64,000 nt of DNA from Cyanophora paradoxa CCMP329 (Eukaryota; Plantae; Glaucophyta): NCBI GenBank assembly GCA_004431415.1, contig QPMI01000520.1:434001-498000 (forward strand). Reading direction: 5' to 3'. Shown here in pieces: positions 35,937 through 56,353 of the stretch (positions are counted from its first letter, which is position 1; each line of letters starts with the position of its first letter). A program made the position numbers and the translations under genes. The notes under the pieces were generated by a model. The model worked only from the letters and a program-made list of their open reading frames with translations. It was not told where the DNA came from and searched no databases.

Positions 35937-36064
35937 TCGTTTTTCTCAGCGCGCTTGCTCTGAGAAGACAAATAAGCGCAAACGCGCTATACCCTTTGAG
36001 TTATTTTTAGGGTTCGATGTAATCGAACCGACCCTTTTGTTATTTTTATAAAATGCCCGTCGCC

Positions 36065-36100
36065 AAAAAATGACGTCATGCTGAAAAAATGATTTAAAGA
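36065..36100 (+). promoter_or_regulatory. Tandem putative early promoters upstream of pPolB
   Basis: AAAAAATGACG (36065) and AAAAAATGATTTAAAGA (36084). Confidence 0.6.
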
Positions 36101-36136
36101 AATATTTTGTAGGATATATAATAAGAACGCCCAAGG

Positions 36137-39100
36137 ATGCCTCGCGCTGTTAGCTATCGGAACGCAAAGACACGAAAGACGATTGATGAGAGAAGTAACT
36201 ATGGATATGCGAACGGGTTTCTGAGTGAAGAACAGTATGATGCTTTCCGCTACTTTGCCTTTCAGAAAAGACCTCGTGGGAGTGGATTGGAGGATATCTT
36301 GTATTCGATTAACGATATCATCGCTCGTGGTGAAGCCCGACAGAATACCGAAGATGAAATTAACCGTTTCGGGAATATTGAGGCAATCGAAGCGGGAAGT
36401 AAGAAGACCAAAGCGGAGCGGATCGCTGAGAAGCGAAACAAGAGAGCGGAGAGGAAACAGAAGAAGAAGGAGAAGAGAGCAGCAAGAACCGCTAAGAATG
36501 TTGTGAAGCAGAAGGAAAAGGAACGATTGGCGAAGGATCGTAAATATCGCAATGAGACCGAAATTATGCAAGCCATGAATAATCTCGTGGTTGAGATTAC
36601 ATGGAAAAATCAGAGAACTAATAAGATCGCATCGGCTCATGAATTCGTCGACAGAATAATAGGATGGGATCGATTCTATGAGCATCACCGAAATGCAGTA
36701 AGAGAAAGACGGGGTATTAAATTCCATCTGACGGTGACCGCAATTTATAAGAAACCGCTTCTACTCAATGGAAGACCTACGGGTATGTTTGGATATGATA
36801 CGTTCACAGGAATCCCCACGCGATACTTCCTTATCCTTAATGAGCGTGAAGTAGTTAATACTGTTGATACATCAATAGACGAACTACAAGAAATTCTCGA
36901 ATCACACCCCAGTGGTAAGTTAGACAATATTATAAAGTTCCAGCTACAAATTCTAACTTATCAACCAATCACCGGTAGCTCTTACATTCCGCTTCCGAAG
37001 GAGATAGAAGCGAAAAAAGCGGTGATCAATCCACAGAACAACGACCAAAAATGTTTCGCATGGGCGGTTACTATCGGACTACGTCACCATGAATTATCGC
37101 ATAAACACCGTTACGATGTCAAGCGATACAGGAAGTATGAGAAGGACTTTAATTGGGATAGTTTCCAGTTTCCGTTGAAGAATAACCCACGGGAATACGA
37201 AAGGGCTTCTAAGATGATCGGGCGACCAATTAATGTATACTCTCTCGAAACCGATAAGGAAACGAAAACATTACGGGTTGTTCCAATTCATGTGTGTATG
37301 GATCCAAACAGACAACATGAGACTATCGATATTCTTGTTTGGGGTGATGAGAAAACAGACACGATGCATTACGGTTACATTTCCAGCCTGTCGCGTCTCA
37401 TTCCAAGTTCACACCATGGGACAACTCATTATTGTAAGGCGTGTTTGAGGGGTTTTACCAGTGAGAGAGTCTTAGAGAATCACATAAAATACAACAAGTG
37501 CTACGATCGCCCAAATGCGACAGTTGATACCATGCCTGATCCTGATTCGGTTATAAGTTGGCGTCCACAGGAACACATTGATAAGACGGTTAGACATCCA
37601 ATGTTCATTGTTGGTGATTTCGAATGTATCTTACAAAAGGTGCAAGAGAAACGAGGCGATAACACAGATGTTTACCAGAAACACATACCCAGCGGATACA
37701 AGATTATGGTAATTCACAAGGGGGAGATCATTAAGCAGGTCTTGTATCGGAAGCAAAACGCAGAAGACGATGATGAGGTAACGCAGCATTTCATGCAAAC
37801 GTTGCGTTTCATGGAGTCTGACCTTCTCGACAGGTTGCGAACTGTTGAGCCAATGGTAATGACCTCGGAAGATAAGGACGATTTCAGCGGCTCTTTCTCG
37901 TGCTACATCTGTAATGAGAATTTCACAGCAGCCAATAAAAAGGTTCGCGATCATGACCACACAACCGGTGAATATCTCGGGGCGGCTTGCAATCTTTGCA
38001 ATCTAAGACGTCGTATTAAGCCAAAGATTCCGGTAATTTTCCACAATCTGAAAGGTTACGATGGTCATTACATTCTGAAAGCTATGAGAGATCCGACAAA
38101 TACCAGTGGTGAAATTCGTTGCATTGCGCAGAATTTCGAAAAGTTTGTAACCTTTGATGTTGGATCTTACAAGTTCTTGGATTCTCTGAATTTCATGGCT
38201 TCCAGTCTCGACAGTCTCGTTAAGAATCTTGGTAAGGATAATTTCAAGTTCACGAATGAGTGGTGTGATTCCATGAAATACACCAAACAACAGCGTGAAT
38301 TACTGATGAAAAAAGGACATTTCCCTTACGATTACCTCGACAGTTTCGAGAAACTCAATGAGACGCAATTACCACCAAAAGATGCGTTTTATTCGAAACT
38401 TAACGACACAGCAATAAGCGACAATGATTATGAGCATTGTGTGAAGGTTTGGGATGCTTTCAAGTGTAAGACACTCGGAGACTATCACGATATCTACCTT
38501 GCTACCGATGTATCCCTACTTGCGGACGTATTCGATACATTCCGCAATGTTTGCTATGAGCAATATGAAATTGACCCGATCCATTTCATCTCGGCTCCTC
38601 ACCTGTCGTGGTTTGCAATGTTGAAGTATACCGGAGTTGAGATAGAACAACTCTATGACCCGGATATGTATAGGTTCTTTGAGATGGGAATTCGTGGTGG
38701 GACATCTATGATTTCCACACGATATGGAGAAGCGAATAACCCATACATTGCGTCTTACGATCCATCGAAGCCGACGAAGTATATCATACCTTGGGATGCA
38801 AATAATCTTTATGGAAAGGCGATGAGTTTCAAGCTTCCCTACCGCTACTTTGAGTGGATTGGCGACATAGATAATTTCGATTACATGGGGTTCGATTCAG
38901 AAGGAGAACAAGGCGCGACATTGGAAGTGGACTTAGAATATCCCGCTCATCTACACGATCTACATAACGATCTTCCGTTAGCTCCTGAGTCGCTTGTAGT
39001 TACACGTGAAATGCTTTCAGCCACACAGTTGGAGATGATCTGTGAGGAGAAGTTACCAGAAATTCGCAAGTTGGTGCCGAATCTGATGGACAAAAAGAAC

Positions 39101-40114
39101 TATATCCTCCACATCAAGAACTTGCAGTATTACGTGAAGAAGGGCATGAAAGTAACGAAAGTGCATCGTGGTGTTATTTACGATCAGTCCGAATGGTTGA
39201 AACCTTACATAGACCTTAACACAAAACTGAGGACACAAGCGCGAAACGATTTCGAAAAAGATTTCTACAAACTCATGAATAACTCAGTTTTCGGCAAGAC
39301 CATGGAGAATGTGAGGAAGCGCAGTAACATTAAGTTGTGCTGTGATCCAAAGAAGCAACTGAAACACAACGGTAACCCATTGTTGAAGACAATGAAGATC
39401 ATTAATGAGAATCTCACAGCCATTGAGTTTTACAAGGGTTCCATTACGTTGGATAAGCCGATTTTCGTTGGTCAAGCCATCTTGGATATTTCGAAACTGA
39501 TTATGTATGAGTTCCACTACGATTACATCATGGAGAAGTATGGTAAGGATCGTGCGAGACTTCTGATGACTGACACCGATTCGCTATATTACGTGATAGA
39601 AACCGAAGATATCTATAAGGATATGAATAAAGACGCGTATTGGTTTGATCAGTCAGATTACAGCAAATCACACATGTGTTACAACCCGACAAATAAGAAG
39701 GTTCCGGGGTTGTTCAAGGATGACAGCAGCGATTACATTGTTACACGGTTTGCGGGATACAAGCCTAAGGCATATTCGTATGAGAAGGAGTTGAATGTTA
39801 AGGCTCTTTGTCTCGAAAAAGACTCGGAGAAGAAAACTGTTAAAAAGTTGAAGGGAGTTCAGAGGTCAGTAGTGCAGAATAGGTTAGAGTTCCAGCAATT
39901 CTACAACACTGTCATGGATCCTATGCAGGAGCAAGAGCAAGTAACAGTTAGAGGTTTCCGATCAAAGAACCACGAAGTAACAACGCAGGAAATGAAGAAA
40001 CGGGCATTTAATGCGCTCGATACTAAGAGGTATCTTTGTGAGGATCTCTACCATACTCTTGCGATTGGGCATTATCGTGCGGTTAGCGCAAACAAAAACC
40101 AAGTAGATATATAA
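36137..40114 (+). CDS. polB: Protein-primed family B DNA polymerase, with terminal-protein/vOTU-like N-terminus and endonuclease VII-like insertion
   Basis: ExoI GDFE, ExoII HNLKGYD, ExoIII YLATD; polymerase motifs DANNLYG, KLMNNSVFGK, TDTDS; CYIC..RDHDH..AC..CN insertion; NNDQKCFAW. Confidence 0.96.
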   Translation: MPRAVSYRNAKTRKTIDERSNYGYANGFLSEEQYDAFRYFAFQKRPRGSGLEDILYSINDIIARGEARQNTEDEINRFGNIEAIEAGSKKTKAERIAEKRNKRAERKQKKKEKRAARTAKNVVKQKEKERLAKDRKYRNETEIMQAMNNLVVEITWKNQRTNKIASAHEFVDRIIGWDRFYEHHRNAVRERRGIKFHLTVTAIYKKPLLLNGRPTGMFGYDTFTGIPTRYFLILNEREVVNTVDTSIDELQEILESHPSGKLDNIIKFQLQILTYQPITGSSYIPLPKEIEAKKAVINPQNNDQKCFAWAVTIGLRHHELSHKHRYDVKRYRKYEKDFNWDSFQFPLKNNPREYERASKMIGRPINVYSLETDKETKTLRVVPIHVCMDPNRQHETIDILVWGDEKTDTMHYGYISSLSRLIPSSHHGTTHYCKACLRGFTSERVLENHIKYNKCYDRPNATVDTMPDPDSVISWRPQEHIDKTVRHPMFIVGDFECILQKVQEKRGDNTDVYQKHIPSGYKIMVIHKGEIIKQVLYRKQNAEDDDEVTQHFMQTLRFMESDLLDRLRTVEPMVMTSEDKDDFSGSFSCYICNENFTAANKKVRDHDHTTGEYLGAACNLCNLRRRIKPKIPVIFHNLKGYDGHYILKAMRDPTNTSGEIRCIAQNFEKFVTFDVGSYKFLDSLNFMASSLDSLVKNLGKDNFKFTNEWCDSMKYTKQQRELLMKKGHFPYDYLDSFEKLNETQLPPKDAFYSKLNDTAISDNDYEHCVKVWDAFKCKTLGDYHDIYLATDVSLLADVFDTFRNVCYEQYEIDPIHFISAPHLSWFAMLKYTGVEIEQLYDPDMYRFFEMGIRGGTSMISTRYGEANNPYIASYDPSKPTKYIIPWDANNLYGKAMSFKLPYRYFEWIGDIDNFDYMGFDSEGEQGATLEVDLEYPAHLHDLHNDLPLAPESLVVTREMLSATQLEMICEEKLPEIRKLVPNLMDKKNYILHIKNLQYYVKKGMKVTKVHRGVIYDQSEWLKPYIDLNTKLRTQARNDFEKDFYKLMNNSVFGKTMENVRKRSNIKLCCDPKKQLKHNGNPLLKTMKIINENLTAIEFYKGSITLDKPIFVGQAILDISKLIMYEFHYDYIMEKYGKDRARLLMTDTDSLYYVIETEDIYKDMNKDAYWFDQSDYSKSHMCYNPTNKKVPGLFKDDSSDYIVTRFAGYKPKAYSYEKELNVKALCLEKDSEKKTVKKLKGVQRSVVQNRLEFQQFYNTVMDPMQEQEQVTVRGFRSKNHEVTTQEMKKRAFNALDTKRYLCEDLYHTLAIGHYRAVSANKNQVDI

Positions 40115-41175
40115 ATGGATCAGGTGCTTAGTTATAGCAAATATCGACAGAAACTAATTAATGATGGTGTTAAATTTGATGAGGAAGAACTACGAAAACG
40201 TTTTAAAAATCGTGAAATAGACCAGATCTTTAAGAAACCCAAAAAGCAGAAGACATTTCTTAGAATCGTTGCCCCTCCTAATTCGTTCCAGGTTGACGTG
40301 ATATTTTTCAAGAACTACAAAACAGGAAATAATGGAATCGACAGGATGATGGGATTTATTGACATATTAAGTCGTAAAGCGTTCGTGTATCCATTCAAAA
40401 TGGGAGACTCAAAAGTAGAGATTCTTAACAGGTTCAAAGTTGAAGCAGGTAAGGTGAATGCGATCGCAGGAGATAATGAGTTTTCAGCTGAAATGTATCG
40501 TAAATGGTGTGAGGAGAACAATGTAACACTTTATACAGACGTTGCAAAGAATGACCACATAACAGTAGGCGACAAATTGGGGATTATCGATAGGTTCACA
40601 AGGACATTCAAGCAATATTTAAGAAAGGCGATTACATCAAGTGGAAACCCAAAGTGGACAGAATACTATAAAGACGTTTTAACAACTTACAATAATTCAC
40701 CGCATGTTTCTTTAAAGAATGATTCACCCAATGCAGTTTATGGTAATAACGAAAAGGAGTCGTTCATATATTTCAGGGACGCTGTTCATAATAAGAGAAT
40801 TAAAGATGGGATGCCCACTTTTAAAGAGGGTGATTATGTTCGTGCTGTGACAGAAAAGAAGGTATTCGATAAAGAAGGTGCAAGATACACGAAGCAGGTT
40901 TACAAGGTAGCAGGTAAAGTAGGTAATCGATTTAGTTTATTGGAAGAGAACGAAGGAGAGACACCCAAAGAAGTGCGTAGAAACTTTAAGATGAATGAGT
41001 TACAAAAGGTGGATAAGGACGCAATTGTTAAGATTCCCACACAAAACGTGTAGAGAGAGTTAGAAAAACAACGAAAGTAAATAGATTAGTAGCAAAAGAA
41101 GGGATTAAACCAAATAGAAAGGTTGTAGTTCGAAAGAAGTATAATTTAAGGAGCGGTGCCGCTACTCGTCGATAA
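40115..41175 (+). CDS. Retroviral-type (rve, DDE) integrase; ORF stops at 41053 but probably continues to 41175 across a 1-nt frameshift
   Basis: FQVDVIFF, AGDNEFS, GIIDRFTRT, YNNSPH and downstream FKEGDYVR domain; alternative frame continues KVNRLVAKEGI..KYNLRS. Confidence 0.9.
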
Positions 41176-41500
41176 ATTTAATTGGTTTGTATTTTTCGAA
41201 AACCTCGCTATGGTGGATACCACGCATAAACCACGTTCCATTTTCATTATCCCATCGTGCGCCGTATTGTTTTGCTTCTTCTTTTTCGCTGTAAGGAACC
41301 GTAATATATACAATTTGATCGATTCCTTTTACTTCTTCTTTTGAAAGTTGTTTAAATTTTGTGAGTAATTCACTGTCTTTTTTGGTTGTATACCAAAGGT
41401 GAGTATCCGGATCCCATCGACCACCCATTTGTTTAACTTCTTTACGATCCTCGTAACGTGAGACAATATAATAACGGGTTGTCTTTGGTTTTGATTCCAT
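41162..41500 (-). CDS. Tandem DUF5710-like domain protein
   Basis: Two repeats: YEDRKEVKQMGGRWDPDTHLWY and VPYSEKEEAKQYGARWDNENGTWF. Confidence 0.8.
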   Translation of the reverse strand: MESKPKTTRYYIVSRYEDRKEVKQMGGRWDPDTHLWYTTKKDSELLTKFKQLSKEEVKGIDQIVYITVPYSEKEEAKQYGARWDNENGTWFMRGIHHSEVFEKYKPIKFIDE

Positions 41501-41520
41501 GTTTTTTTACAAAAAGTTAA

Positions 41521-41855
41521 GATAAATCTTTATATGTTTAAAACGAATTCGATGTGGTGAATACAGGTAATTGAAATTTTGGTTTATGGTAATTAGTTTT
41601 TGTGGGATATTTTTCGATTAATCGTGGAATATCGAGAGATATCGTGTGTAATCGTGTGGATATCGTGTTTATCGTGTGGATATGGTGCGGATATCGTGGT
41701 GTATCGTGTGGATATGGTGCGGATATCGTGGTGTATCGTGTGGATATCGTGTGAAATTAATCGATAGAATGGCTTATGGTAAGGAGTTTTGAGATTTTGT
41801 GAAATATGAGACGATAAATGGTGTCGTGGGGCAGAACGCCCAAAACACCATTTTT
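41521..41855 (-). repeat. Right terminal inverted repeat of element 1 (335 bp)
   Basis: Reverse complement of 29951-30285. Confidence 0.95.
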
Positions 41856-42411
41856 TATAAATTTGTTGAGCGTGTAATTAAATTAACGTTAACGTAGCTA
41901 GCGCTTTTTCCTTCAATGAACTTCCTTCGCTTTTATCAAGTACTAGTACTAGTACTAGTACAGCCTGTAGGAAATGGCGAATCATTGAATGTTTAATTTT
42001 TAAAAAGTTTCAAAGTGAGAAAAAATACTTTCAGGTTGCCCAGCTAGGTTGCCCTGTCTGTTTATCCTCGTCGACGGTTCACGCCCTCTGTTCCTCTTCC
42101 GGAAGGTCACGGAGTGACACACCGGTACCGTGACATGCACAGTGACCGTCGGACAGACGTCGAGTCGTCGACGTCGTCGACTCACGCCAGTCCGCGGCCG
42201 GGATCCCGGCCGTCGACGTCATCCCGGGCCGGGAGTCCGACGTCGGCTGTCTCGGCGACTCTCATGATCACGTACGTACGCGGTACTACGGTACTACGTA
42301 TACTACACTGGTACGTATAGAGGCCTATTAGAGGGCCATAGGCCCATAGTCTATTAGAGGCTACTAGCCCTAGTTGGTACCGGTAGTTACAGTAGCCTAG
42401 TACTGTCACAG

Positions 42412-42625
42412 TGTAGGCGTAGTGAAATTGCCGTGGAGTTAAATTGCCGAATTCGCCCAAAACCGGAATTGCCGTGGCGGTAAATTGCCGAATCCAGAAT
42501 TCTGCTCTATGGCGGGCTAGGAACATGCCTACCCCCCAAGCGATTGCCGTGGAGCTAAATTGCCGAATTCAGCCTCTCGGCAATTTACGGCAATTTAAAA
42601 CCACGGCAATTTAACTACTCCTACA
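42412..42625. mobile_element. MITE-like element with ~25-bp TIRs and internal AAATTGCCG repeats
   Basis: tgtaggcgtagtgaaattgccgtgg versus the reverse complement of ccacggcaatttaactactcctaca (2 mismatches). Confidence 0.6.
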
Positions 42626-43038
42626 GTAGTACCACCCCTGGTAGCTACTGGTACGGTAGGCGGCCGTAGCCTAGTAGGCCCCGCGTACTCAACTAACGTG
42701 GTACCAACTACTACCAAGCTACGTATACGTACATGCTACCAACTTGGCAACATTCTGGCAAATTAACTCCCGGAGTCCGAATTCGAATACGAAGGCCCTG
42801 CAGGCTGCAGCCTGCAGCTGAGGCTTGGCTCAGCTAGCAACTTGTACACTGTGACATGTAGCAAGTCGATCCCAAATTAACATGTACAGACGTCGACCGA
42901 TAGAATACGTATACACGCGTACGTGGTATGCATCGAGATGTATATTAACCGTTGAACGCTAGCTAAGTGCCACGGACGTGATCATGAGGTGCGCTGTTCG
43001 CGATCGTACGCGTCTGACGGTCGCATCGATATCGATAT

Positions 43039-43200
43039 TCGAACCTATGTGAGCGTCAGCGTAGCATAGGGCAGTGTATGGCTGCCAAATAAAGGCAGCC
43101 TTGCTTACGCACATATGTACAAGGGGCGCACTTACAAGTTATAAGTGCGCCCCTGGGGTACAAGCCTCAGTCTTGCTTCGCAGCCAAGGCCTCTAAGCTT
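43039..43200 (+). repeat. Split direct repeat A1
   Basis: Same as 45079-45239 except one extra G in a G-run. Confidence 0.93.
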
Positions 43201-43205
43201 AGGTC

Positions 43206-44292
43206 ATGGCTCGCTCGCGGAGGAGCCCATCGTGGGCCCCTCTGTTCGTAGTCGTCTTGACCATCATTCTGCTCGTCGCCTGTGCCGAGGCGGCGCAGAA
43301 ACGCAAGTCAACGGCCACTGGTGCGCGCAAGTCGGCCAAACCCAAGACGGCGACGACCCCCGCGCCCAGGCCCGGAGGTCGTCATCTCGTCTTCAAGCTC
43401 CGGCCAACGACAGTGCGGAGGAGGAGCAGCCTGCACCTCCGCCGACGCGATCTCGCAAAGGCAAGGAGAAAGCCGTGTCGCCGGATCCGGACCAGCAGCA
43501 GTCCGACCCAGAAGATGAACCTGAGGACGACGTTGCCGTTAGACTGGCACAGCGTGAGCAGTTCGGTGGCGCCTACGACGAGGAAGAGCAAGTGGCTGCG
43601 CACAACTTTCCGAACTTGGCGCAAGTGGATCCGGGCGCGGCTGGCCCGTCAACCGGCTTCACCCGTCACCTTCAAGGCCCTTATGCTGTACCCGCTGGCA
43701 ACTCGACTGCCCCAACGTCGACCAAACCGGCAGCGGGTGCGCTTCCGCCAGCGTGGGCTGAGCTACTTCAGCGTGGGATAGATAGCGCGGTCATCAAGCT
43801 TCAAGAGCAGCAGCAGCAGCAGCTCGGCGAGCAGCAGAAAGACAACCATGAGGCTATGCAGCTCAAAAACCCGTGGCTTCGTGAGCTTGCCCTGCAGCTA
43901 TCGCAGCTTAAGTTTCAGCTCAAGAGATGCTCTTCGTGCACTGCGTGCTACGATCACGTAAAGCAGAGCCTCAAAATCCTCGACGAGCTCCGGAAGCGGA
44001 TCGACATTCGCGACAAGGGCGGCGACAAGCTTGCCGAGCGGCTGGCAGGTGTGCCAGAGGAGTATCGGGGCACGGCTGCGGCGCTGGCGCACGCGCTCAA
44101 CATTGCTGGCCCGGAGGCCGCCGGCGGGCGCCCGTATGTGCAGCACGCCAACCCGCGGCCCAGCACCAGGGCCGCGATCGCCCGCCGTCGCAGCGCAACA
44201 GCGGGATGTGTTTCCGCTGCAACAAGCCCGGGCATGTCGTGAAGGATTGCCCGAACGAGCCGCGCCCCGGCTGGCGCGACCCCCCCAAGTAG
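43206..44292 (+). CDS. gag: Gag-like ORF1 with CCHC zinc knuckle (apparent frameshifts near 43360 and 44160)
   Basis: CFRCNKPGHVVKDC near the 3' end; coiled/low-complexity body in ORF 43145-44242; first ATG after A1 is at 43206. Confidence 0.75.
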
Positions 44293-45017
44293 ACGTGCGC
44301 GCCCTTGTGTGGACGCGCAGTTTTCGTTTCGCATTTCGCTAGATACTAGTGTTTCGGTGTGTTCTTGCAAGCATAAGTATTGCTAGCATATGCAAGTGCA
44401 GTCTTCAGAAGATCTAGAGTGTGCGTGTATGCTTCCCTAAACATGCAATACATGTATTATGCTTCCATTTCATGTGATGGTGTGGCCGGGTGCGGCATTG
44501 TGGCCGGGTGCGGCATAGTCATTACCAGCCGTGGTGGCGCCGGCATGCTGTGGCTTTATGCATTGGTCCTGTGTGCATTTGCATGTGTTAACACTGTGAA
44601 GTGTGACTGTGAGTGTAGTCTACTTTTCTTTTCAATGCTAGTGGCATATATTGCCGTCTGGATGACTCCAACCTGGCAGAGCCCCAGCTGACTCCCGGCA
44701 ACTGACCTGTTTCCAGCACAGGTCAGGAGTGCTGATGGCTGTCGAGCTCCTGGCCCCTCCGGCCTTCCCGTGTGTCGCTATCGCATACTGGGCGCTCTGA
44801 AATTAACCTAGTGCATTTTGCAGGTGAGGAGTACACAAGGGTACGAAGATTCCATGATGCCAACTGTTCCCGCTGATATCGCAGGTTGGCGCATTCATCC
44901 AGAAAGTCCATGCCTGTGCAAATGTGTTGTGGCACTGTGGGTGCATTGTGGCACTGTGTGTGCATGTGAGCTCAAGACTTGAACCAACAAGCACATTGAC
45001 ACGCTCACTCTTATATT

Positions 45018-45239
45018 CTTCATGACAAGACATGTTGTGCTTAGCTTGCTGTAAGCAAGGCTGCCGTGGCAGCCATACTCGAACCTATGTGAGCGTCAGC
45101 GTAGCATAGGGCAGTGTATGGCTGCCAAATAAAGGCAGCCTTGCTTACGCACATATGTACAAGGGCGCACTTACAAGTTATAAGTGCGCCCCTGGGGTAC
45201 AAGCCTCAGTCTTGCTTCGCAGCCAAGGCCTCTAAGCTT
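45018..45239 (+). repeat. Internal B1|A2 junction
   Basis: 61-bp B copy abutting 161-bp A copy (..gccatac|tcgaacc..). Confidence 0.93.
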
Positions 45240-47268
45240 CTTCCCGTTCGCGTGTCACCATCTTCAAGCCAGCGGCTGCATGGACCATCAGCTGTAGCAG
45301 TGCTAGATGGCACCGCGATAATTGGGCATGTCTGCCAATGCAAGGCCTCACCTCACTTTGCAGGAGGCTTTGTTGCATCCTGCATTCAAGCTGCAGTCCA
45401 ACAGTGGAGAGCGATTGGAGCCAATGATGTCGTGCTCAACTGGATCTTGCGTGGTTTCCCTTTGTCAGGAGCGAGGCGGCTGCCAGCAGAGCGCCGGGCC
45501 AACCACAAGTCTGCGGCTGTGGACCATCAGGACTTTGTGAGAACCGAAATTCAGAAGCTTTTGCGCACGGGAGCGATCAGAGAAGTTGAAGAAGCTCAAG
45601 TGAACATTGTCTGCTCACTGTCTGTGGTGCCCAAGAAGACTGGATCCAAGTTGCGGCTCATCTGGGATGGCCGGCCTACCAATAAAGGCCTTCCGGACAT
45701 CCCCTTCAAGTATGAGACTCTTGAGCATGTTGCAGCCATGCTGCGCCAAGGCTGGTACATGTTCACTATTGACCTTGAATCTGGATACCACCACGTGCCA
45801 GTCTCCCCGCAAGACTGGCGGAACATGGGCTTTGAGTTTGACAGCAAATTCTATGTGTACACAGTTTTGCCCTTCGGCCTCAAGCACTCACCGTTTGCAT
45901 TCGTCAAGATCATGCGACAAGTGGTCAACTACTTCCGCCGCTTTGGCATCTTCGTGGTGAACTATGTTGACGACTGGTGGTTTGCTGCTCCAACCTACGA
46001 GAAGGCCTGTGAATTGCGGGATTTCGTCCTCAAAACATTTGCTGCCCTCAAGCTTGTGGTCAACAGCAAATCTGAGCTCACCCCAGCACAGTCGGTGGCT
46101 TTCTTGGCTTCATAGTGGACTCCGCCCGCATGTTGTTTGAAGTACCCCAAGACAAGCTTGGTCGTCTGCTTGCTTTGATCAAAGGGCTTCTGAAGAAAAA
46201 GAAATCAGCATCTGCACGTGAAATGGCCAAGGTCGCCGGCACCTTGTGTCCATGGCACGGGGCTTGGCTCCAGCTCGCATCAAGACCAGGTCCCTCTTTC
46301 GATACATCAATGTTGTGGCAAGAGAATGGCATTGGAATCATCCAGTGGAGCTCACCAATGAGACTCGTCGGGAACTTGAGTGGTGGCTGGCCAACATCCA
46401 CCGATACAATGGCCGCTGCCCTATTCGGCCTGAAAGGCTCCTTGTGTTGACTACGGATGCAAGCCATGTTGGTGCAGGAGCCTGGATCACTACCCGAATT
46501 GGTGATGCTCAACCTGTGGCTTGGGAGCTTGAGCCTGCCCCATTCCAGTGCCTGTGGAACCAAGAAGAAGCTCAGCAAATTTCGTCGTGGCGCGAGTTAA
46601 TGGCAGTGCTTCGCGCTATGCAGCACTATCAAGGTTTATTGCGCAATCAGAACATCTTAGTTCGCTCGGACAACACAGTGACTGTGGCCTACATCAACAA
46701 TGGTGGCGGAAGACATGAATACCTTTGCCGAGTTGCAGCAGCAATTTGGGATATTGCTCTGCTCAACTGCATCAGCATTGAAGCAGAACACATTCCTGGT
46801 GTTGACAATGAGTGGTCCGATGCTTTGAGTCGCTACTTTTACCCCGCCGACTACTCTTTGAAACCTGGATATTTTGCCATGGTCAGTCGGACATTTGGAC
46901 CTTTTGATATTGATCGTATGGCCTCATCAGCCAACACTCACCTAAATCGATACTTTTCCATTGATTTGAATGATCGACATGCTGAAGGATATGATTGCTT
47001 TACAGCAACCTGGCGTGGTGCTCGTAATTACGTCTTTCCGGACCCAAATTTCCTCTTGCACCTTGTGTCACATGTCCGCCAGTGTAGGGCCTCGGCAGTT
47101 TTTATTGTCCCTCAGTGGCCCTCAGCTCCATGGTGGCCACAGTTGCAGCTTGCCTTGCGTGCACCTGCAATGGTGCTCGGCCCAGCATATGACGTGTGCT
47201 ATCGCGGGCCTCGCTCGGCACAGTTACCTTCCTGGATTCTTGTTGCTCTTTATGCGTCGTGGGAGTAG
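45240..47268 (+). CDS. pol: DIRS-type pol: reverse transcriptase, RNase H, DNA N6-adenine methyltransferase-like domain (frameshifts near 46105 and 46245; start unclear)
   Basis: RT: KLRLIWD, IDLESGYHHV, LPFGL, YVDD. RH: TTDAS, WRELMAV, RSDN, HIPGVDN..DALSR. MT: FGPFDIDRMAS..YVFPDP..VPQWPSAPWWP. Confidence 0.9.
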
Positions 47269-47422
47269 ATTGAAGGCTCTTGCTGCAGAATTCAACTCCT
47301 GCTCATCTCTGCTCAGCTTACTTTGTCCAGCAACAGGGATAGAAAGCTTGAGTGGGGGGCTTTAAAAAGAAGAAGAAGAAATGTAGTCTGACATACCCTT
47401 GACTGGTGATGCAGGTGCTCGT

Positions 47423-48423
47423 ATGGCTGATCTGCTCAACCGGGTCACTTTCTACAGAACAAACTCTGTGAGCGAGCGAACCCAAAGCCTCTACGCCCGC
47501 TGGGTCGTCCTCTATGAAGGCCATTGCGCGGTTCACTGCATTCCAGCCTGGCCACCAACAGCTTCTGGCGTCGCAACACTGCTGGTGGCTCTTGCTGATG
47601 AAGAGTACGGTCTCTCAGCAATTGACCAGTGTCACTCTGCTCTGCTACATCAGACAAGGCAGAGGATGTTGCCTACTACTGCATTTGCTCACCCCCTTGT
47701 GCTGCAAACATTGCAAGGAATCGCCCGACTTTGTGGAAAACCAGCAAAGCAATCTGCATTGGTCACGTCCGTCCACCTGGAGGCGATTGCTCGTACCTAC
47801 GCTCGTTCCCCTCAAACAAGCTCCTTCGCGCCCTTGTGATGTTGCTTACCGGTTTCTTTGGCCTGTTGCGGCGTGGCGAAATCGTGGCACTCCGGCGGCA
47901 AGATGTGTCCATCCGCGCGGATCGCGTCGTGCTCTTCATTGCCGGTTCCAAGACCGATCGTCGTCGCCAAGGCGCGCAAGTTGTCTTGGGCGCTGTCCCA
48001 GAGTCGGTCATCTGTCCGGTGTTCTGGTTTCGAACCTACTTGCGGACTGTAGCGCTCGCGGATCCGGGCGCACCTCTTTTTGGGCAGCTTCGGGACGCAG
48101 CTCGTTCTCTGTCAGCTCAGACCGTGGCCTATGTTCTCCGGTTCGCATTTGACGCGGCGGGCTTGGACGTCACTGGTATCACACCTCATGGCTTGCGTCG
48201 CGGTGGAGCTACTGCTCTGGCTGCGGCGGGCGTGCCTGAAGAGCTTGTTCAAGCGGTTGGTCGCTGGTCCTTGTTGTCAGCGGTCTACCGACGCTATATC
48301 GATTCTGCTGAGCGCCCGCCCTTGGCTGCGCTCATGGCTAGGCCTGGTGCTCGTTACGCTGGCCCGTCAGCTTCGCTGCAGTCATGTCGGCAGCAACTCG
48401 CGCGTACTCGGCGCAGTAGTTGA
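47423..48423 (+). CDS. Tyrosine recombinase (frameshift near 47820)
   Basis: GLLRRGE, SKTD, HGLRRGGAT, GRW and YRRY catalytic motifs; SAM-like N-terminal part in ORF 47399-47839. Confidence 0.9.
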
Positions 48424-48831
48424 TTGTCTAGTCTTAGAGTCTTGCTTCGCAGTTGTGCGCCTTTGCTGTGCTGTCGGCGCTTGTCTCCCTCGCTCACAAG
48501 CGAGGGCAAGCTGTGTAACTTGCTGAGCGGCTTGTTCCCTAGCCGCTCGAGCGGCTTTGCTTAGCCGCTTTCAATGTGTGTTAGCAATGCCCATTGTTTA
48601 CTATGCCTTCAGTCATCTTTAAGCTATTGTTAGTGCCAACCATTGATATCTTTTGATGAATAATTGATCAACAATTGATCACTAATGTTCAATCATTCTA
48701 CGTCCGCAAGACTCACTCTGCAGCGTGCGCTAGCTGATGTCCTCGAGCGCAGTTGCAGCTTGCCCTTCTTGTGAGCGAGCGAGTCATGATCTTAGCTTCG
48801 CGGCTTTGGCAAGCGCGAATCTAGACCTTCA

Positions 48832-48892
48832 CTTCATGACAAGACATGTTGTGCTTAGCTTGCTGTAAGCAAGGCTGCCGTGGCAGCCATAC
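48832..48892 (+). repeat. Split direct repeat B2
   Basis: Identical to 45018-45078. Confidence 0.93.
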
Positions 48893-49299
48893 CGATATCT
48901 CATGATCGATATCAGAGTCGTACGTATACGTATACATATATACGCGTACGTATACGTATATGGACACGAGCGCGTACGTGCTTACGGGTGTGCATGACTG
49001 GAAGAACCAGCAATTGCAACAGGCCTTGGCCTAGGTCGGCGCGCACCATGCATATGCATACGTCAGCGGACTCGGTGGCGGTGCCGGTACGCGAAGCTTT
49101 TCCTGCGTATACATGCTCGCGTTCGAATCCGTGATCATGAAGACTGGCTGGCGGCATCGGTACCGGTTAGCAGGAGATCGAGGGGCCGATATCGATGTCG
49201 CGGGCGTCGAAAGGCCGCGGCCACGGCCAGCCGCAGCGCCGGCTATCGCGTTCGAATTCGCGAGCAGCAGCCGTAGCTGCAGTTCTGCGCACCAGCCCA

Positions 49300-51821
49300 G
49301 CGGGAGTGCCATCAACCAGCAGCAGCCGCAGTCTCGCAAGCCCGACGGCGACAGAGGCATCTTCGACGTCCTCGTATGCTCCGAGCTGCAGCACAGAGAA
49401 CGCGCAGCCGTTGTTCCTCTCTATTCTCCGACGCGTCAGAAACGGATGTGCGCACATGTATCGACATCTGTGCATGCGATCGCGATCGACGCCGGCGACG
49501 CGTCGCCGCGTACAAGAACGCGTGGGGGCGGGCGGCTGACCGAACGGTTGGGGCCGGGGTCGGCAGCTAAACCGGAGGACTACCGGGAAGCGGGGGATCT
49601 GGAGCGGCCGCCGGTCGTCGTCCCCGTGCCGGACGACTGCGCAAAGTGGGCCGTCGTCCCCATGCGCGAGGTGGACGCGAGCGAGGCCGGCTTCGAGCAG
49701 CTCCGCACCGAGCTCGGCATGCCCGACGCCCCCGTCTACAACGCCAACCTCATAAGCACGCGCAAGTATCGAGGTGAAAAAATTGCACGCGGTCCGAATG
49801 GGCGTGTAGAGCATGTAGCTATAGCTTACTTTGCGTGCGACAGTGTTGCTCACTCGGAAGAACCCGGAGACCACAGGCGACGGCGAGAGCGAGGACGAGC
49901 TGTTGCCGAAACCCCCCCCTGGGGCCGGCCCCGGGCATGCACCTGCGAGATCTAGAACTCGATCTCGCGCGAGCGGGCGCGCAGCTGCGCATGCAGCAGG
50001 CGATCGCGAGGACGATTGCGAGAACTCGGCCGATTCGAGTGATGATGAGGAGGCGCCGCTTCCGCCGCCATGGGCGGGGCGCGCCATTTTGATGAGCCTC
50101 GTTTATGCGACCGACGGGACTCGTTTAAGCGACGACGGCCCGGGTCCAATGCTCGAGTATGTTGAAGAGGTGCGCCTGGCCCCGCCGGCGCGGCCCCGGC
50201 CCATCGCTACTCGAAATTCCCCTGTCGACCATGGCTAATTTATAACGTGTCCGCGGGGACTCAGGGCGGCTCGCACTCTCGCTCCAACCGCGCCTCTTCT
50301 GTCAGGATCTCCTTCAACGACAAAGGGCACACGCAGGTGCGGTCCCCGGATTCGAATATGCGCCCCGCCCGATCCGGACATTCTGCACAAATTTCTGCAA
50401 TTTCGCATTGAGATTGACATGTGAAATTCAGAAAACTTTTAAACAATTTAATTAGGGCCTGCGCGCCGCCAGAGAAACTGCGCGCCGACACGGAGAATTT
50501 ATTTTCGGATCCCGGAGCGCGCAGGACACATTTGGGGTGATGGTCTCGTCCCACAAGGTGCGCATGAGAATTTAAAATTTTCTTCGAAATGGAAATACCT
50601 CCTCGGCGGCCGTGTTGAGTCCGAGAGCTGCATGCGCACCGAGCTTGGATTGACGAAGGGCGGGGGCAGCACAACAAGAAACCGTTCGCGCTGAAGGTGG
50701 TGTGGGAGGACACGCAGGCGCCCGTGGCCCGCAATTTCATCACCTTCGTGACGCGCACGAAACACGAGCGGGCGCCGCGGGCGCCGCTCCGCCGTCCCCG
50801 CGTCCGGCAGGAGGGCCCGGCGGGGGACCAAGACCGCGATGGCGAGGAGCGCGAGGAGCGCGAGGGGGCGGCGGGGAGCGATGAGGGGCATGCCGGTGGG
50901 AGCGGGCGCAGCAACAGCGCGAGCGCGGGGCCCTCCTTGGCGCCCTCCCCAGCCCCCGTACCGGCGGCGGCGGCGAATCTTGGCGAGCCCGAGCTGGCCA
51001 TGCATATGGCTGCCGGCCGCGCAGCCGCCCCGTCGGGCTCGCGCAGCCGCCTTCCGCCGCGCGCCGCCTCGCGCGCCGCGCGCGAGCTCCTCAGCAGGGC
51101 CAGGTCAAGTGCGTTTAAATTTGCGCGCCGCCGCCGGCCCCGCGCGCGCGCTGTGCCGGCCGCGCGGCCTCATCATGATCATGACCTCGCGATCGGCAGG
51201 CAGCGCTAGCGACGAGGGCGAGGAGGACGTGCAATTGGGCTCGGCGCTCCGCGAAACGCGTCGGCGAGCCGGCGCGCCGGCTTCGAAGCGAAGGAAGGCA
51301 CTGGCCACGCCGGCGACCGGGGCTCCGGTACCGGTGCGACGGGAGAGGGTGGAGAGGGCAGGGCGGGGTGCGCCCGAGGGGGCCCCGAGCGACGACGACG
51401 TGAGCCTGAGCTCGGGCGAGGACTCGCGATCGGATCCGGAGCGCGACCGCGAGGGCAGCGGGGCCCCGCCCCCCGCGCGCATCCGGACAGCTGCAGCCCC
51501 GGGCCCGGCCAGCGCCCCGCCCCCCGCCGCCCCGAAAACTTCGATGGCGTCGGCAGAGTCGACGTCGGTCGGGGCGGCGGGGGCGCGGGGGGCGGGGGCG
51601 GCGGTGCTCGCGCTCCCCGTGGACCCCGCCATGTTCCCCGCCACCTTCGCCGCCTCGAGCTCCGCCAGCGCCGCCCGCACCCGCCCCGCTCTCCCCGACC
51701 TCGCCCTCCCCGTCGACCCGCCGCTGGTGCCGTACACGTATCCCGCAGTCGGGGGGACGGGGGCGGCGGCCGGCGTGGGGCCCGCACTCGCCTTCCTTAT
51801 CCAGGTCGCCGACTTCCGCGG
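49300..51821 (+). CDS. Probable host multi-exon hypothetical gene or relic, interrupted by element 2
   Basis: GC-rich coding-like segments with host-type GTGCG donors; last donor at 51822 lies just before the AT-rich insertion. Boundaries approximate. Confidence 0.3.
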
Positions 51822-51839
51822 GTGCGCCCCCGCCCCCCG

Positions 51840-52357
51840 CACACATATACAACGCCCGGCTTTTAGACCTCGGCTTATTTAAATTGATATCGTTAGTATA
51901 TAACCTGTATTTATAATATATTTATCGTGAATATGTGTGTATTTTATCTGTGATATGTATTTATTTTATCGTGGGTTATAGCTTCTTTTTGCCCCCGCTC
52001 ATAGCGGTGTGGTTATCATACACGCTTTTCATTTCATGCCTTCCGTGTTCGAATCGCCCTGCGATGAGAATCACGCCTTCGAATCCCGCCCGTTCCACAT
52101 AATTCCGATCGATCATGCCCCACCTTGCCTGTATACGCCCCCACAGTGCTGGAGTAGACTAGAGGCTGTGGCCGGTAATTCAAAAAAAAAAAATTTTTAA
52201 TAAAATATGTGAAATATGTATAGTTTATGTGAATTTTAGCTATATTCTCGATGAGTAGACTTAAATATCTCGTGAATTTCATTATAGTATAGGTGTGACT
52301 CAACTTAGTTTAATTATAACTTGCCTCAGTCTAAAAGCCGGGCGTTGTATATGTGTG
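51840..52357. repeat. 518-bp AT-rich cassette bounded by a perfect 29-bp inverted repeat (MITE or structured end of element 2)
   Basis: cacacatatacaacgcccggcttttagac (51840-51868) and its reverse complement (52329-52357). Confidence 0.8.
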
Positions 52358-52499: not shown

Positions 52500-52770
52500 G
52501 CTACGCACAGAAACTACGCAATTTATCGCAACTACTCAAAGAAACTACGCAATTTAATACCGGGAACTACTGAAAAGATACCAAAACTACGCAACTACGC
52601 AACTTTCAGAAAAAGTTTGAAATTCGGGCTGGAAAATTTAGAAAAGTGTAAAACTTGCGTAGTTGCGTAGTTTTGGTTTCGTTTGCGTAGTTTTGGTTTC
52701 GAATTGCGTAGTTTTTCATGGTAAGTTGAGTAGTTTCAAGTAGTTTATATATTATAAAGTAGTTTCTTAT
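52500..52770. repeat. Palindromic iteron array 1 (AACTACGC / GCGTAGTT)
   Basis: 22-bp perfect inverted repeat 52581-52602 / 52655-52676 plus flanking oriented copies. Confidence 0.85.
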
Positions 52771-52924
52771 TAATATCAATATGATTCTATGATATATACC
52801 ATGCTTTCTCTACTTAAAGAGCGCCGGCATGCTATAAAGGGAAGCTACGCGATAGTTTCGCACTGAAACACGACCGTTTTATAGGCTACACAATAGTCTC
52901 GCACCTAAATGCATGCGGGCAATC

Positions 52925-53180
52925 GGAGACTACGCAATTTAACGTAACTACGCATGAAAACTACGCAATCTGATCGCTTTTAATACCGAAAACTACACAT
53001 TTAATACCAAAACTACGCAACTACGCAACTTTCTGAAAAAATTTGAGAGTGAAAAAAAAAAAACTTGCGTAGTTGCGTAGTTTTGGTATTAAATGCGTAG
53101 TTTGCGGTATTAAGTTGCGTAGTTTAACATAGGTAGTTGAGTAGTTTAAAGTAGTTTTTATTAATTATAAAGTAGTTTAT
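52925..53180. repeat. Palindromic iteron array 2
   Basis: 31-bp perfect inverted repeat 52998-53028 / 53065-53095 around an A-rich spacer. Confidence 0.85.
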
Positions 53181-53579
53181 TATTTATCTTATTGTTATCA
53201 GTCTGAGACTCTATGAAAATCGATTGACCTTAGTGTGAAACAGTGCGCCCCGCCCACTATGCAAGATACATGCCAACAACATGCGAGTTCTATGAAAACA
53301 AAAACGATTTAGTCATGTATATATTTCGTATATATGTCTGAACCTCCGTCTAAGATATTCCGCACAACTCTGAATTTGTTTTGTCTTTTTGTTTTTTTCG
53401 CATATGACGACATATACATATATATACCGGCGTCACCGACATATTCGGGGTCATCACATCGCGGCGATTCCGAAAACATATAGCATGCCACAAAGTAGTT
53501 TTTTATGTGTTTTTCGATCGATCGACCAATCGCGGATGTGAGCGTAACCGACTGTTTATTTTATTTAATTTATCATTCA

Positions 53580-53860
53580 TGGGTGACAGGGGGGATACCG
53601 GTTAAGGTGACAGAACGTGACAGGGGGGATACCGGTTAAGGTGACTGACAGGGGGGATACCGTAAAGGTGGCATTTTGTGGACATTTGTGGACATCGGGG
53701 CTACCGGGTTTGTGGTCATTTTGTGGACAAATTGCGAACAAAAACTTGAATGCATATATATGTGTATATGACTGACCAGCCGCTGAGCGACTGACCGGCT
53801 TGCAAGTTGCAATTTCCCGAGTTCCGAGTCCCGAGTCCCGAGTCCCGAGTCCCGACTCGA
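53580..53860. repeat. Tandem repeats: TGACAGGGGGGATACCG x3, TTTGTGGAC-like copies, (TCCCGAG)n
   Basis: Visible at 53583-53665, 53675-53730 and 53815-53857. Confidence 0.8.
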
Positions 53861-54221
53861 TAACACCGGCGATCGCGACTTCGCGGAGACCCCCTTCCGT
53901 TTTCCCCGCATAACTTTGGACAGCGAGCCGATCTCGGCGCGCTCTCAATTGCTACGTGCTCGTAACTTGCTTCCGGGCATGTTGGTGCTAGTTTGACTAG
54001 CTTACGCAACCGTGGCGCGACGCGCAAGTTCGCCATCGGCACAAGTGCCCGAAAACCGAGGTGTCCCCTACGTCGCGCGCGCCGGCGCGCGTTCCCGTAA
54101 GGCTCCACTAGTCATACTTTGCATCCGCGTGCGCATAGAGTAGTTCTACACTACTACAAAGTGGCGCGGTCTGATTCGCAAAGCGCGCGATTTGGCGGCT
54201 ACGAAAGCACCGCGGCGCCTA

Positions 54222-55664
54222 CTACTTTCGTGGTCTCAGAGTCGCTTTTCGATCGCCATTAGCTACCGGCGCTACCGTTGCTACTTTTCTACTACTTCTT
54301 AATGTAGCTTTGGTTTCCGGCGCTTTATAGCTCTCAGTCTGATTAGAGAACGACTTATACCATCGTTGGCTATTCACGCCGCCGGATAGCTTAGGCTCGG
54401 CGGCGGTTACTAGCCGCTGTAATTCTTTATTTACGCGTTTCTCTTTTTGCACGCGATCCTCTAATAGAGTGCCTTGCGGCACAGTCGCGGCGGCTTCTAT
54501 GCCCTCTCTACGCAATTGCGCATCGACCCGCGCCTCGTCCTTCGCCGCCTCTAATGCATCTACTGTGGGCGCCATTAGGTAATCCACAGCTTGGACAGGC
54601 AATAGCTCGTGGAAGGCAAAGCGACCCTCTACGCGATTGCCGTCCGGATCAGTTAGCATAAACTTATAGCCCTCGCGCGCGGCGACAGTATATACGATTC
54701 GGCTCCAATTGTTACCGCCCTTAGCGAATGGCGTCTTCTCGATGCGTAGCCTTACTGACATGCCCGGCTGAATCTGATCCAAATAAGCTATCGATTTCTT
54801 GAATTTCGCATCTTCTTTTTGAACTATGAGCTTATAGTGACTCTCGTTGGTCTCGGCGGGCATATAGCCGGTCGCAGAGTGCACCGTATTATTATAGTTA
54901 TATTCTAACTCGGGCAGGACATCTATAAATCGCGCCGTATTATTAGCGATGCAGTAGCTCGTGATCAGCCGCCGCATTTGCTTGTTAAATGCTTCTATGC
55001 GCCCTTGCGCGCGATGGTCGGCTGTGTCCGCAATCTGATGCTCTATAAACTGATTCTCGAAATATTCTCTTAACAGGCTATTAGTGAATTCTGAGCCGCG
55101 GTCGCTTTGAATCTTAAAAATTGGTCGCGGCGCCTTATTTTGTAGCTGTATAAAGGCGGCTAAGGTCGATGCAGCCGACTTGTCCCGCATCGGTATAATA
55201 TAGCCGACCCGCAACGTGTTCTCCATCCCAGTTAAAAACGCTTGGTAGCCGTCATTATACTTAGCATACGCCGGAAAGAATAGCAGATCAATTACGTAGG
55301 TATCGAGAGGCTGTCGGATTGGTATAGCCGGGTCTCGTTTGCGGGATAGGTGCGGCGCATTAATCTGAACGACCTCTTGCCGGCTATACCACTCTTGCAA
55401 TTTCTTATAATTCTCGTCGGGCAGCTCTTGCCGTAGCTTAGTGATCCCTTTGAAACCGGTTTGCGGATCGTAGAATTTACGCGCGATTTTCGATTGCTCC
55501 GGGACAGCAAGGGCTACGGGCACATCGCGGGGCACCAAAGCCTTTAAATCAGACCGCTTTACTATGCGGCTCTCTTTATTCTCTTTCGGCACGGGGATCG
55601 GCAATGTGCTCCCCTCTAAATCTTGCGATCGTCTTACTATCGGCGGTCTTGACATCCTTGTCAT
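54222..55664 (-). CDS. Retroviral-type (rve, DDE) integrase
   Basis: FYDPQTGFKG, YVIDLLFF, IQSDRGSEF, QGRIEAFNK, YNNTVHSATGYMP; first ATGs at 55664 and 55655. Confidence 0.93.
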   Translation of the reverse strand: MTRMSRPPIVRRSQDLEGSTLPIPVPKENKESRIVKRSDLKALVPRDVPVALAVPEQSKIARKFYDPQTGFKGITKLRQELPDENYKKLQEWYSRQEVVQINAPHLSRKRDPAIPIRQPLDTYVIDLLFFPAYAKYNDGYQAFLTGMENTLRVGYIIPMRDKSAASTLAAFIQLQNKAPRPIFKIQSDRGSEFTNSLLREYFENQFIEHQIADTADHRAQGRIEAFNKQMRRLITSYCIANNTARFIDVLPELEYNYNNTVHSATGYMPAETNESHYKLIVQKEDAKFKKSIAYLDQIQPGMSVRLRIEKTPFAKGGNNWSRIVYTVAAREGYKFMLTDPDGNRVEGRFAFHELLPVQAVDYLMAPTVDALEAAKDEARVDAQLRREGIEAAATVPQGTLLEDRVQKEKRVNKELQRLVTAAEPKLSGGVNSQRWYKSFSNQTESYKAPETKATLRSSRKVATVAPVANGDRKATLRPRK

Positions 55665-55727
55665 CAGACAATAAAAAAGATCAATGTAACATTTTACTCG
55701 CACGCGACAAGAAAAGGTATTGTTTAT

Positions 55728-56353
55728 TTACGGTAAATCGGGATATCCGTGCGACCACTCAAACACTTGCAGTAGATTGCTTTTATGATTCTCGGTATAC
55801 CACAGCTGAGCGTCACTATCCCATATCCCTCCGTTCTCTTTTAAGTATTTACGCAAGGCAGCTCGGTTTCGGATCACAAGCCCGAATTCCGCGAATTTAG
55901 TGTGGTGCTTTTCGAGGTTTTTGTGAATATCCAAATAGTGCCTTTCCCTATTATAATGCGCTTCAAACAAAACATCCATGGCTGATTCCTTGTGGAACAG
56001 AGGTATTCTTCTATCCGTTACATTATTCACGAATCCACAAACCTTTGCGAAATCAATCAAAGACACAAAGCCGTGAACAGATACATATTGATCATGTATA
56101 ACCCATTGATCCCATCCTTTCCGTTCTCCCAGGCAGAACAAGCGGCAATCGGAAGACGAAAGGGCATATAATTTGGGATTATCGTGCTCGGAAAATAGCC
56201 GATGTCGCTTATATCCGTGATATCTAACGTCTTTCCTTGTCCGTGGCTTCCTTCTTTAATAGCTTCGTATAAAGCGCAGAAGTCCCATAGATTAAACGTG
56301 ACCTTTTCGATATCAGAAGTAAAGATGCGCTTGCCCTCATACTTATACTTCAT
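55728..56353 (-). CDS. Hypothetical protein with C-terminal DUF5710-like motif (probably one gene split by a frameshift near 56140)
   Basis: Overlapping ORFs 56057-56353 and 55728-56141; LKENGGIWDSDAQLWY resembles the element 1 DUF5710 repeats. Confidence 0.55.

Follow-up and report, generated by a model that had tools for sequence, protein, structure and literature searches.

The locus at positions 43039-48892 of the window (the whole 64,000-nt stretch of Cyanophora paradoxa DNA analysed) raises the question of whether a retrotransposon with a tyrosine recombinase (YR), whose terminal repeats recur between its genes, moves as one element or as two separable units. Repeat comparison and domain search place its repeats and gene blocks in the order A1-gag-B1A2-pol-YR-B2 (Table 1), which bears out the layout of the initial annotation: A1-gag-B1 followed by A2-RT/RH/MT-YR-B2, with the junction between gag and pol. 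The gag unit measures 2040 bp, the pol-YR unit 3814 bp and the whole element 5854 bp, in line with the 2.0, 3.8 and 5.9 kb proposed there. The locus is probably a young, multi-copy, PAT-like YR retrotransposon of the DIRS order, most likely transposing as one 5.85-kb unit.

Table 1. Features of the element, in window coordinates.
Feature	Position	Strand	Remarks
A1, left terminal repeat	43039..43200 (43035 including extended match)	+	162-166 nt
ORF1, Gag	43206..44289	+	362 aa in intact copies; between A1 and B1
Non-coding tail of gag unit	44290..45017	+	728 nt, 51% GC
B1, internal copy of right terminal repeat	45018..45078	+	61 nt
Imperfect palindrome spanning B1|A2 junction	45047..45150	.	fold z -7.3
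A2, internal copy of left terminal repeat	45079..45239 (45075 including extended match)	+	directly abuts B1
Antisense spliced RNA	45085..48839	-	runs X15, X16, X19; absent from DNA run X3
ORF2, pol	45307..47265	+	RT, RNase H, Dam-like MT
RVT_1	45633-46106	+	E 2.6e-17
RNase H (RT_RNaseH)	46429-46686	+	E 3.2e-05
Dam-like MT (PF05869)	46873-47139	+	weak: E 0.0037, 17.4 bits vs cut-off 28.1
ORF3, tyrosine recombinase	47405..48420	+	~335 aa; start approximate
Phage_integrase domain	47824-48309	+	E 8.7e-12
B2, right terminal repeat	48832..48892	+	61 nt, 100% identical to B1

Repeat architecture

The two copies of A match over 166 nt at 99% identity, the sole difference being one G within a G-run. 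Judged by length and identity, the A and B repeat pairs are non-random, and the repeat search found no further copy of either elsewhere in the 64-kb window. Their arrangement, A1...B1A2...B2, is that of the split direct repeats of the PAT superfamily and not of inverted terminal repeats. In A1, one hairpin reads GGCTGCC-AAATAAA-GGCAGCC, and a further palindrome includes TTATAAG; B1 carries TGTAA and another hairpin (GGCTGCC-GT-GGCAGCC), and terminates in ATAC. The B1|A2 junction is spanned by an imperfect palindrome, in which the last part of B is complementary, in inverted orientation, to the central part of A and the heptamer GGCTGCC/GGCAGCC occurs four times; by its sequence, this palindrome is a candidate recombinase site and end-pairing structure. 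The single Rfam match, of the junction hairpin to a miRNA precursor, was weak, sub-threshold and discarded. On the + strand, TGTAA in B and AATAAA in A are candidate polyadenylation motifs.

Coding capacity of the two units

Gag begins 6 nt past the end of A and consists of a signal-peptide-like N-terminus, a coiled-coil-like middle and a C-terminal CCHC zinc knuckle (zf-CCHC, E 1.2e-05, residues 319-334 of P0138; CFRCNKPGHVVKDC in the window copy), a zinc finger in Gag being a character of Pat1-like elements. The protein is 99% identical to a EukProt cluster with at least 19 Cyanophora paradoxa gene models, and the annotated copies P0139 and P0146 are intact. Beyond Cyanophora, a full HMMER search matched nothing but zinc knuckles and a single relative of 206 aa, for which no contig is on record. 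Within the non-coding tail, the stretch 44658-44903 is common to another, more abundant sequence, as loose contig ends at both positions in all runs indicate.

The pol ATG, also present in read contigs, lies 68 nt past the end of A and is separated from gag by 1017 nt; this gap and the closeness of an ATG to A in both units fit separate expression, as far as sequence can tell. The pol of a relative (P0021) is 72-83% identical to the window pol across three frames, spanning the same shifts. A methyltransferase-like domain following RNase H is a character of the PAT superfamily, and the Dam family (PF05869) is on record for the relatives P0023, P0037, P0041 and P0043. The catalytic R, K, HxxR and Y are all conserved in the integrase domain of the tyrosine recombinase, which thus looks intact in its catalytic residues. 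No rve integrase was matched among the eight scanned + strand ORFs of the element, and the combination of RT/RNase H with a tyrosine recombinase and no DDE integrase is that of the DIRS order. The flanking ORFs (42182-42526 and 49113-51882) have no Pfam match.

Outside Cyanophora, relatives of pol and YR are numerous, but none of Gag is detectable except through the zinc knuckle; both units are identically bounded. These features favour a possible co-integrate, in which a non-autonomous A-gag-B and an autonomous, gag-less A-pol-YR-B became joined, one inserted at the end of the other, and are now copied together. A contig from a relative (L001) may represent such a gag-less unit. Against this origin stand the similar depths of the two units and the perfect abutment of B1 and A2, and in practice it is hard to separate from the single-unit explanation; we consider it very unlikely.

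Copies and flanks

The window copy is 1-2 nt short relative to the short-read contigs behind 43364, 44158, 44753, 45308, 46105, 46241, 47402 and 47807, whereby the frame is shifted in gag (43364, 44158), pol (45308, 46105, 46241) and YR (47402, 47807). The assembly is thus imperfect at the base level, and the layout might be put down to misassembly or to a local rearrangement confined to the window copy. This is scarcely credible, since every part is covered by short-read contigs obtained independently in several studies; these break exactly at the A/B boundaries, where two copies of A and of B per element would lead one to expect it, and an RNA contig spans B|A.

At 43031-43039 and at 48892, loose ends of the short-read contigs lead into several distinct left and right flanks, which implies several insertion sites in the genome. 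Elements of the DIRS order make no regular target-site duplication. CGATAT flanks the window copy on both sides, but the target itself is CGATAT-rich and other copies have other right flanks. The near-identity of A1 with A2 and of B1 with B2 fits a recent insertion. Searches with YR, pol and Gag brought up no contig of this genome, and metagenome scans gave no match with the A-repeat pattern and a single relative, at 27% identity, with pol.

In DNA run X3, contig depth is 797-913 for the gag unit, 737-940 for the pol unit and 1897 (~2x) for A, although contig depth is not copy number and the ends of short contigs fall at A and B, which makes full-length copies and equal numbers of solo units indistinguishable by this measure. 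Similar depths of gag and pol, with A at about twice their level, fit copies that carry both units.

Transcripts

The sole assembled RNA of the pol unit is antisense. It contains 16 canonical introns, namely 15 GT..AG introns (50-171 nt, 45276 to 48073) and one of 68 nt within A2 (45085-45152), whose contig runs across A2 into B1 and so spans the B|A junction. This RNA is read as non-coding from its sequence. An antisense gene was considered and rejected: joined exons give frames of 211 and 202 aa (172 unspliced; N at indels), six single exons lack a significant Pfam match (best E 0.13), and the splice sites are kept at only ~2-4 of 11 positions in one relative (L005) and at none in L001. Splicing of gag to pol across the junction was likewise rejected, as no run contains a + strand joint and pol has its own ATG. 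Among the assembled RNA contigs there is neither a sense transcript of the pol unit, including any starting at A2, nor a full-length sense RNA of the element, and no circle or cDNA was observed. These absences, and the antisense strand of the only pol-unit RNA, count against the single-unit reading.

One unit or two

The initial annotation went further than the layout and proposed a segmented or permutable retrotransposon, in which the two A...B units are transcribed separately and can move apart or be joined in either order. We consider this unlikely. No more likely is its full form, in which A serves as promoter and leader for two mRNAs (gag and pol-YR), each ended by B, and the recombinase can also resolve a circle with two junctions into 2.0-kb gag and 3.8-kb enzyme circles, or insert it in either order. 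The predicted circle with two equivalent B|A sites does follow from the anatomy, yet such a circle is common to every split-direct-repeat element and so does not single out this one. Each unit has an ATG shortly past A and closes with a non-coding tail ahead of B, which favours the two-unit proposal, as do the candidate polyadenylation motifs in B and A. The L001 contig, which holds the pol-YR of a relative and ends exactly 30 nt into the homologue of the start of B, is in keeping with it but is equally explained by an element simply without gag. What weighs against independent halves is the likeness of the gag and pol depths in X3, with A at about twice that depth, and the lack of sense pol RNA, A2-initiated transcripts included, among the assembled RNA. 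Solo A-gag-B, solo A-pol-YR-B or permuted insertions, which the proposal predicts, do not occur in the 64-kb window, other copies being beyond the resolution of short contigs, and permuted copies are unreported in the literature surveyed.

Precedents for a lone part bounded by A and B, or for an element without gag, come by analogy from other families and hosts. SIRE of Trypanosoma cruzi is the counterpart of the part of VIPER between A2 and B2 (PMC6681497), and variants of the 'Ngaro' of Cafeteria burkhardae lack ORF1 through ~2 kb deletions at the 5' end (PMC8547959). However, the authors interpret these parts as remnants or deletions (PMC6681497; PMC8547959), and the published B1A2B2 lies at the 3' end.

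Transposition as a single unit is the reading preferred here. In the published replication model for split direct repeats, the position of the internal junction is free. Following that model, + strand RNA would run from A1 to B2, its cDNA would be closed into a circle with the internal B1A2 junction as template for a complete B|A joint, and the recombinase would insert the circle at this joint. The complementary stretches of B and A, by pairing, may contribute here as well. In the lineage of the window element, the junction would have shifted into the gap between gag and pol. As pol begins 1 kb past the end of gag, the chances are about even that a separate mRNA, with its start in A2, serves for the translation of pol. 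Should TGTAA in B and AATAAA in A serve as polyadenylation signals, the element could hardly produce a read-through genomic RNA.

Junction position among relatives

The pol tree, built without named Repbase or Retrobase references, groups the window element (100/100) with L005 and the L001 clade, adjoining split-direct-repeat elements that bear MT. The internal junction lies after YR in four loci (L002, L004, L007 and L009), the nearest full-length relatives fetched, whose pol is 33-36% identical to the query L001. In L003, which the tree places within the after-YR elements, it lies between pol and YR; in L006, gag and pol are contiguous. From the differing positions and the nesting it follows that this group has seen repeated shifts of the junction.

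Published elements point the same way. A junction between MT and YR has been described for nematode PAT1 and kangaroo, and 'translocation of the internal repeats' is treated as a recurrent character (PMC4157794); configurations besides A1-internal-B1-A2-B2 exist (PMC8969392). The statement in the initial annotation that the internal repeats usually lie 3' of the coding block thus holds for the four after-YR relatives and fails for PAT1, kangaroo and L003. A gag|pol junction was not met in the literature surveyed, a survey that lies outside the older papers of Goodwin and Poulter. Set against that literature and the fetched relatives, the gag|pol junction read in the window copy is a third position of a movable feature.

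Nematode Pat1 (PAT of Panagrellus; C. briggsae, P. pacificus) and kangaroo of Volvox likewise have A1...B1A2...B2, RT/RNase H and YR, with the junction inside the coding block and hence two A...B units; they also have an MT domain, to which the weak MT-like match here may correspond, and Pat1 shares the Gag zinc finger with the window element. Their units, however, are gag-pol and YR, as opposed to gag and pol-YR here, and kangaroo differs further in its inverted YR and the lack of a zinc finger. Echinoderm Pat1-like elements and Ngaro/VIPER (A1-ORFs-B1A2-spacer-B2) share the repeat logic and gene set, but their junction follows YR, which leaves as second 'unit' only a short spacer without coding sequence. 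The window element therefore has neither of the published Pat1-like junction positions (the MT|YR nematode form and the echinoderm form). Nor does it fit Ngaro, which has internal repeats downstream of YR and, like VIPER, no MT domain: the window junction lies upstream of pol, and pol contains a weak MT-like match. DIRS-1 of Dictyostelium belongs to the same order and encodes the same enzymes, and its internal region complementary to the ends resembles the complementarity of the B end and A middle; its terminal repeats are inverted, in contrast to the split direct repeats here. DIRS-1 biology also involves antisense transcripts and cDNA (PMC7192593).

Significance

With its many introns, the antisense RNA is a natural example of how transposon transcripts are handled in an intron-rich host. 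Were the two-unit proposal true, this would be a segmented retrotransposon whose halves could be separately inherited, lost or exchanged. The gag|pol layout is the most favourable known for testing whether the recombinase resolves or permutes a circle with two joints, because both products would bear genes and be easily distinguished. Few characters serve to classify tyrosine-recombinase retrotransposons, and where the internal junction lies is among them; a third position, in a glaucophyte, strengthens the view of the junction as a movable module with a location irrelevant to replication.

Organization of the Element

The initial annotation had proposed the layout A1-gag-B1|A2-pol-YR-B2 for the PAT-like copy, and the repeat coordinates (see the table), identities, abutment and unit sizes bear it out. 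A1 and A2 share 99% identity over 166 nt, the sole difference being one G within a G-run, B1 and B2 are identical over 61 nt, and A2 starts directly at the end of B1. The gag unit measures 2040 bp and the pol unit 3814 bp; the rest of the 64-kb window holds no further copy of A or B. The hexamer CGATAT occurs on both flanks (43033-43038 and 48893-48898), in a surrounding target rich in CGATAT/ATCGAT, and could be chance, a 6-bp duplication or a common crossover core. Other copies tend to have a left flank ending in (A)TAT, similar to the ATAC with which B ends. The element and its surroundings are intermediate in GC and are flanked by two low-GC islands (29945-41861 and 52500-63684; 35-46% GC, vs 65-83% in host DNA of 1-28000).

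Features of the element and of related contigs
Feature	Position	Strand	Basis or remark
A1, left terminal repeat	43039-43200	+	repeat comparison; identity back to 43035
ORF1, Gag	43206-44289	+	EukProt Cyanophora matches; CCHC knuckle in intact copies
B1, internal copy of B	45018-45078	+	repeat comparison
A2, internal copy of A	45079-45239	+	repeat comparison
RVT_1	45633-46106	+	Pfam; between A2 and B2
RNase H	46429-46686	+	Pfam; between A2 and B2
Dam-like methyltransferase, weak match	46873-47139	+	Pfam E 0.0037, below cut-off; between A2 and B2
Phage_integrase	47824-48309	+	Pfam; between A2 and B2
B2, right terminal repeat	48832-48892	+	repeat comparison
Antisense spliced RNA	45085-48839	minus	16 canonical GT..AG introns, 50-171 nt; only assembled pol-unit RNA
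Sites 1-2 nt short	43364, 44158, 44753, 45308, 46105, 46241, 47402, 47807		vs short-read contigs
Tandem array	L003 9948-10542		period 82 nt
Tandem array	L004 7115-7519		period 45 nt
Tandem array	L002 8975-9400		period about 27-47 nt

The recombinase keeps its R, K, H-x-x-R and Y residues. ORF1 gave no Pfam match in the broken frames of the window. The middle part of ORF1 matches, at 99% identity, a EukProt protein cluster of Cyanophora paradoxa with at least 19 gene models, which makes this glaucophyte the host. ORF1 is identified from sequence features as a Gag, because the intact Cyanophora versions (P0139 and P0146, 362 aa) show a signal-peptide-like start, a coiled-coil-like middle and a C-terminal CCHC zinc knuckle. 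With a charged start, a hydrophobic core and A-x-A, residues 1-30 (43206-43300) resemble a cleavable signal peptide, as do the starts of annotated Cyanophora models; a signal peptide is unusual for a retrotransposon Gag. The same proteome, with its 19 or more Gag models, yielded, for this family, neither a pol nor a YR model, possibly because RNA-guided gene prediction followed antisense introns.

At eight sites the window copy is 1-2 nt shorter than the short-read contigs, never longer, and its frames shift there; the alignment to P0021, pol of a close relative at 72-83% identity, continues through these shifts. The missing nucleotides look like long-read assembly errors in G/C runs, the alternative being genuine decay of this copy.

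The last part of B and the middle of A are inverted complements of each other. Around the B1|A2 joint there are four occurrences of the 7-mer GGCTGCC/GGCAGCC, and folding of the 222-nt B1A2 stretch is far stronger than that of shuffled sequences (z -7.3). This structure is plausibly a recombinase site and end-pairing device. The plus strand also carries TGTAA in B and AATAAA in the loop of the A hairpin.

Transcripts of the Two Units

In X15, X16 and X19, all of them listed as probable RNA runs, the gag unit assembles as a single unspliced contig (43170-44953). The pol unit is present solely in spliced form, from 48839 to 45209, in a contig whose length reaches 2548 nt. This contig has 15 gaps of 50-171 nt, all CT..AC on the plus strand and thus GT..AG on the minus strand, allowing for alignment shifts and for 1-2-nt indels at two borders. 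Repeat A itself holds a sixteenth intron (68 nt), carried by a contig that passes from A into B, which means that the antisense RNA crosses the junction. DNA run X3 contains none of these splice joints. Coverage is nil inside the 171-nt intron in X16 and X19, and therefore neither strand of the pol unit is represented by an assembled unspliced RNA in these two runs. On the minus strand of the pol unit GTGAG occurs 10 times, vs 3 on the plus strand, and six of the 10 serve as donors. The introns overlap conserved sense coding sequence, their splice sites are poorly conserved in the related contig L005 and absent from L001, and, among six exons searched singly, none gave a significant Pfam match. 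The genome of C. paradoxa has 67.6% GC, 9.2 introns per gene and a mean intron of 86 bp (PMC6704402), in keeping with the host assignment, and the antisense RNA is read as a non-coding transcript spliced by this intron-rich host. At both element ends RNA contigs continue into foreign flanks, a hint that other copies are read through from the DNA beside them. Within the non-coding tail of the gag unit, a part of 245 nt (44658-44903) is joined to other sequence at both of its ends in all runs and is several-fold deeper in X15 and X19; this part is therefore common to a second, more abundant repeat or transcript.

A1 ends 6 nt before the gag ATG and A2 68 nt before the pol ATG (45307), whose frame is that of pol in the read contigs. 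Since 1017 nt separate the end of gag from the start of pol, it is plausible, with chances about evenly balanced, that pol would be translated from a separate mRNA started in A2. The antisense RNA is no evidence for an A2 promoter.

Probable Movement as One Unit

From a circle with two B|A sites, the initial annotation had further deduced a segmented or permutable element. The two-unit anatomy stands; movement of the A...B units apart, or in either order, is improbable. SIRE/VIPER (PMC6681497) and ORF1-less Cafeteria elements (PMC8547959) offer loose precedents for a sub-unit occurring alone, but no solo or permuted unit was seen in the 64-kb window, and depths in X3 are alike for gag-unit (830, 797, 797, 913) and pol-unit contigs (940, 862, 737) and about double for A (1897). 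The element is present in twenty public runs, four of which were aligned to its stretch. The ratio of about 1:1:2 fits copies carrying both units, although the depth of contigs does not equal copy number and, with breaks at A and B, equal numbers of solo gag and pol units would yield the same pattern. Loose contig ends at 43031-43039 and 48892 indicate several insertion sites. The element is probably an ordinary split-direct-repeat retrotransposon that would transpose whole, its internal joint relocated between gag and pol.

Position of the Internal Junction

The nearest pol sequences are short Logan contigs. L005 holds pol only, and L001 (3650 nt) pol and YR without gag. At its 3' end L001 includes exactly 30 nt of the sequence homologous to the start of B before it breaks off, as expected of a k=31 graph at a repeat; the same layout would explain this, and so would an element without gag. 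In L006 (39% identical) gag and pol are contiguous. The next-nearest relatives come from animal-associated assemblies, several with tandem arrays inside or just after pol. Among these the junction lies downstream of YR in L002, L004, L007 and L009 and between pol and YR in L003. In the pol tree the window element groups with L005 (100/100) and then the L001 clade (100/100), while L003 nests within the after-YR elements. This nesting and the differing positions imply that the junction moved more than once among relatives.

Neither DIRS or PAT elements of Cyanophora nor a gag|pol junction were described in the works examined. Configurations besides A1-internal-B1-A2-B2 exist (PMC8969392), and 'translocation of the internal repeats' has been scored as a recurrent change (PMC4157794). 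In nematode PAT1 and kangaroo the junction lies between MT and YR, and elsewhere near the 3' end (PMC4157794), whereas here it lies between gag and pol, a new positional variant of the known split-direct-repeat design.
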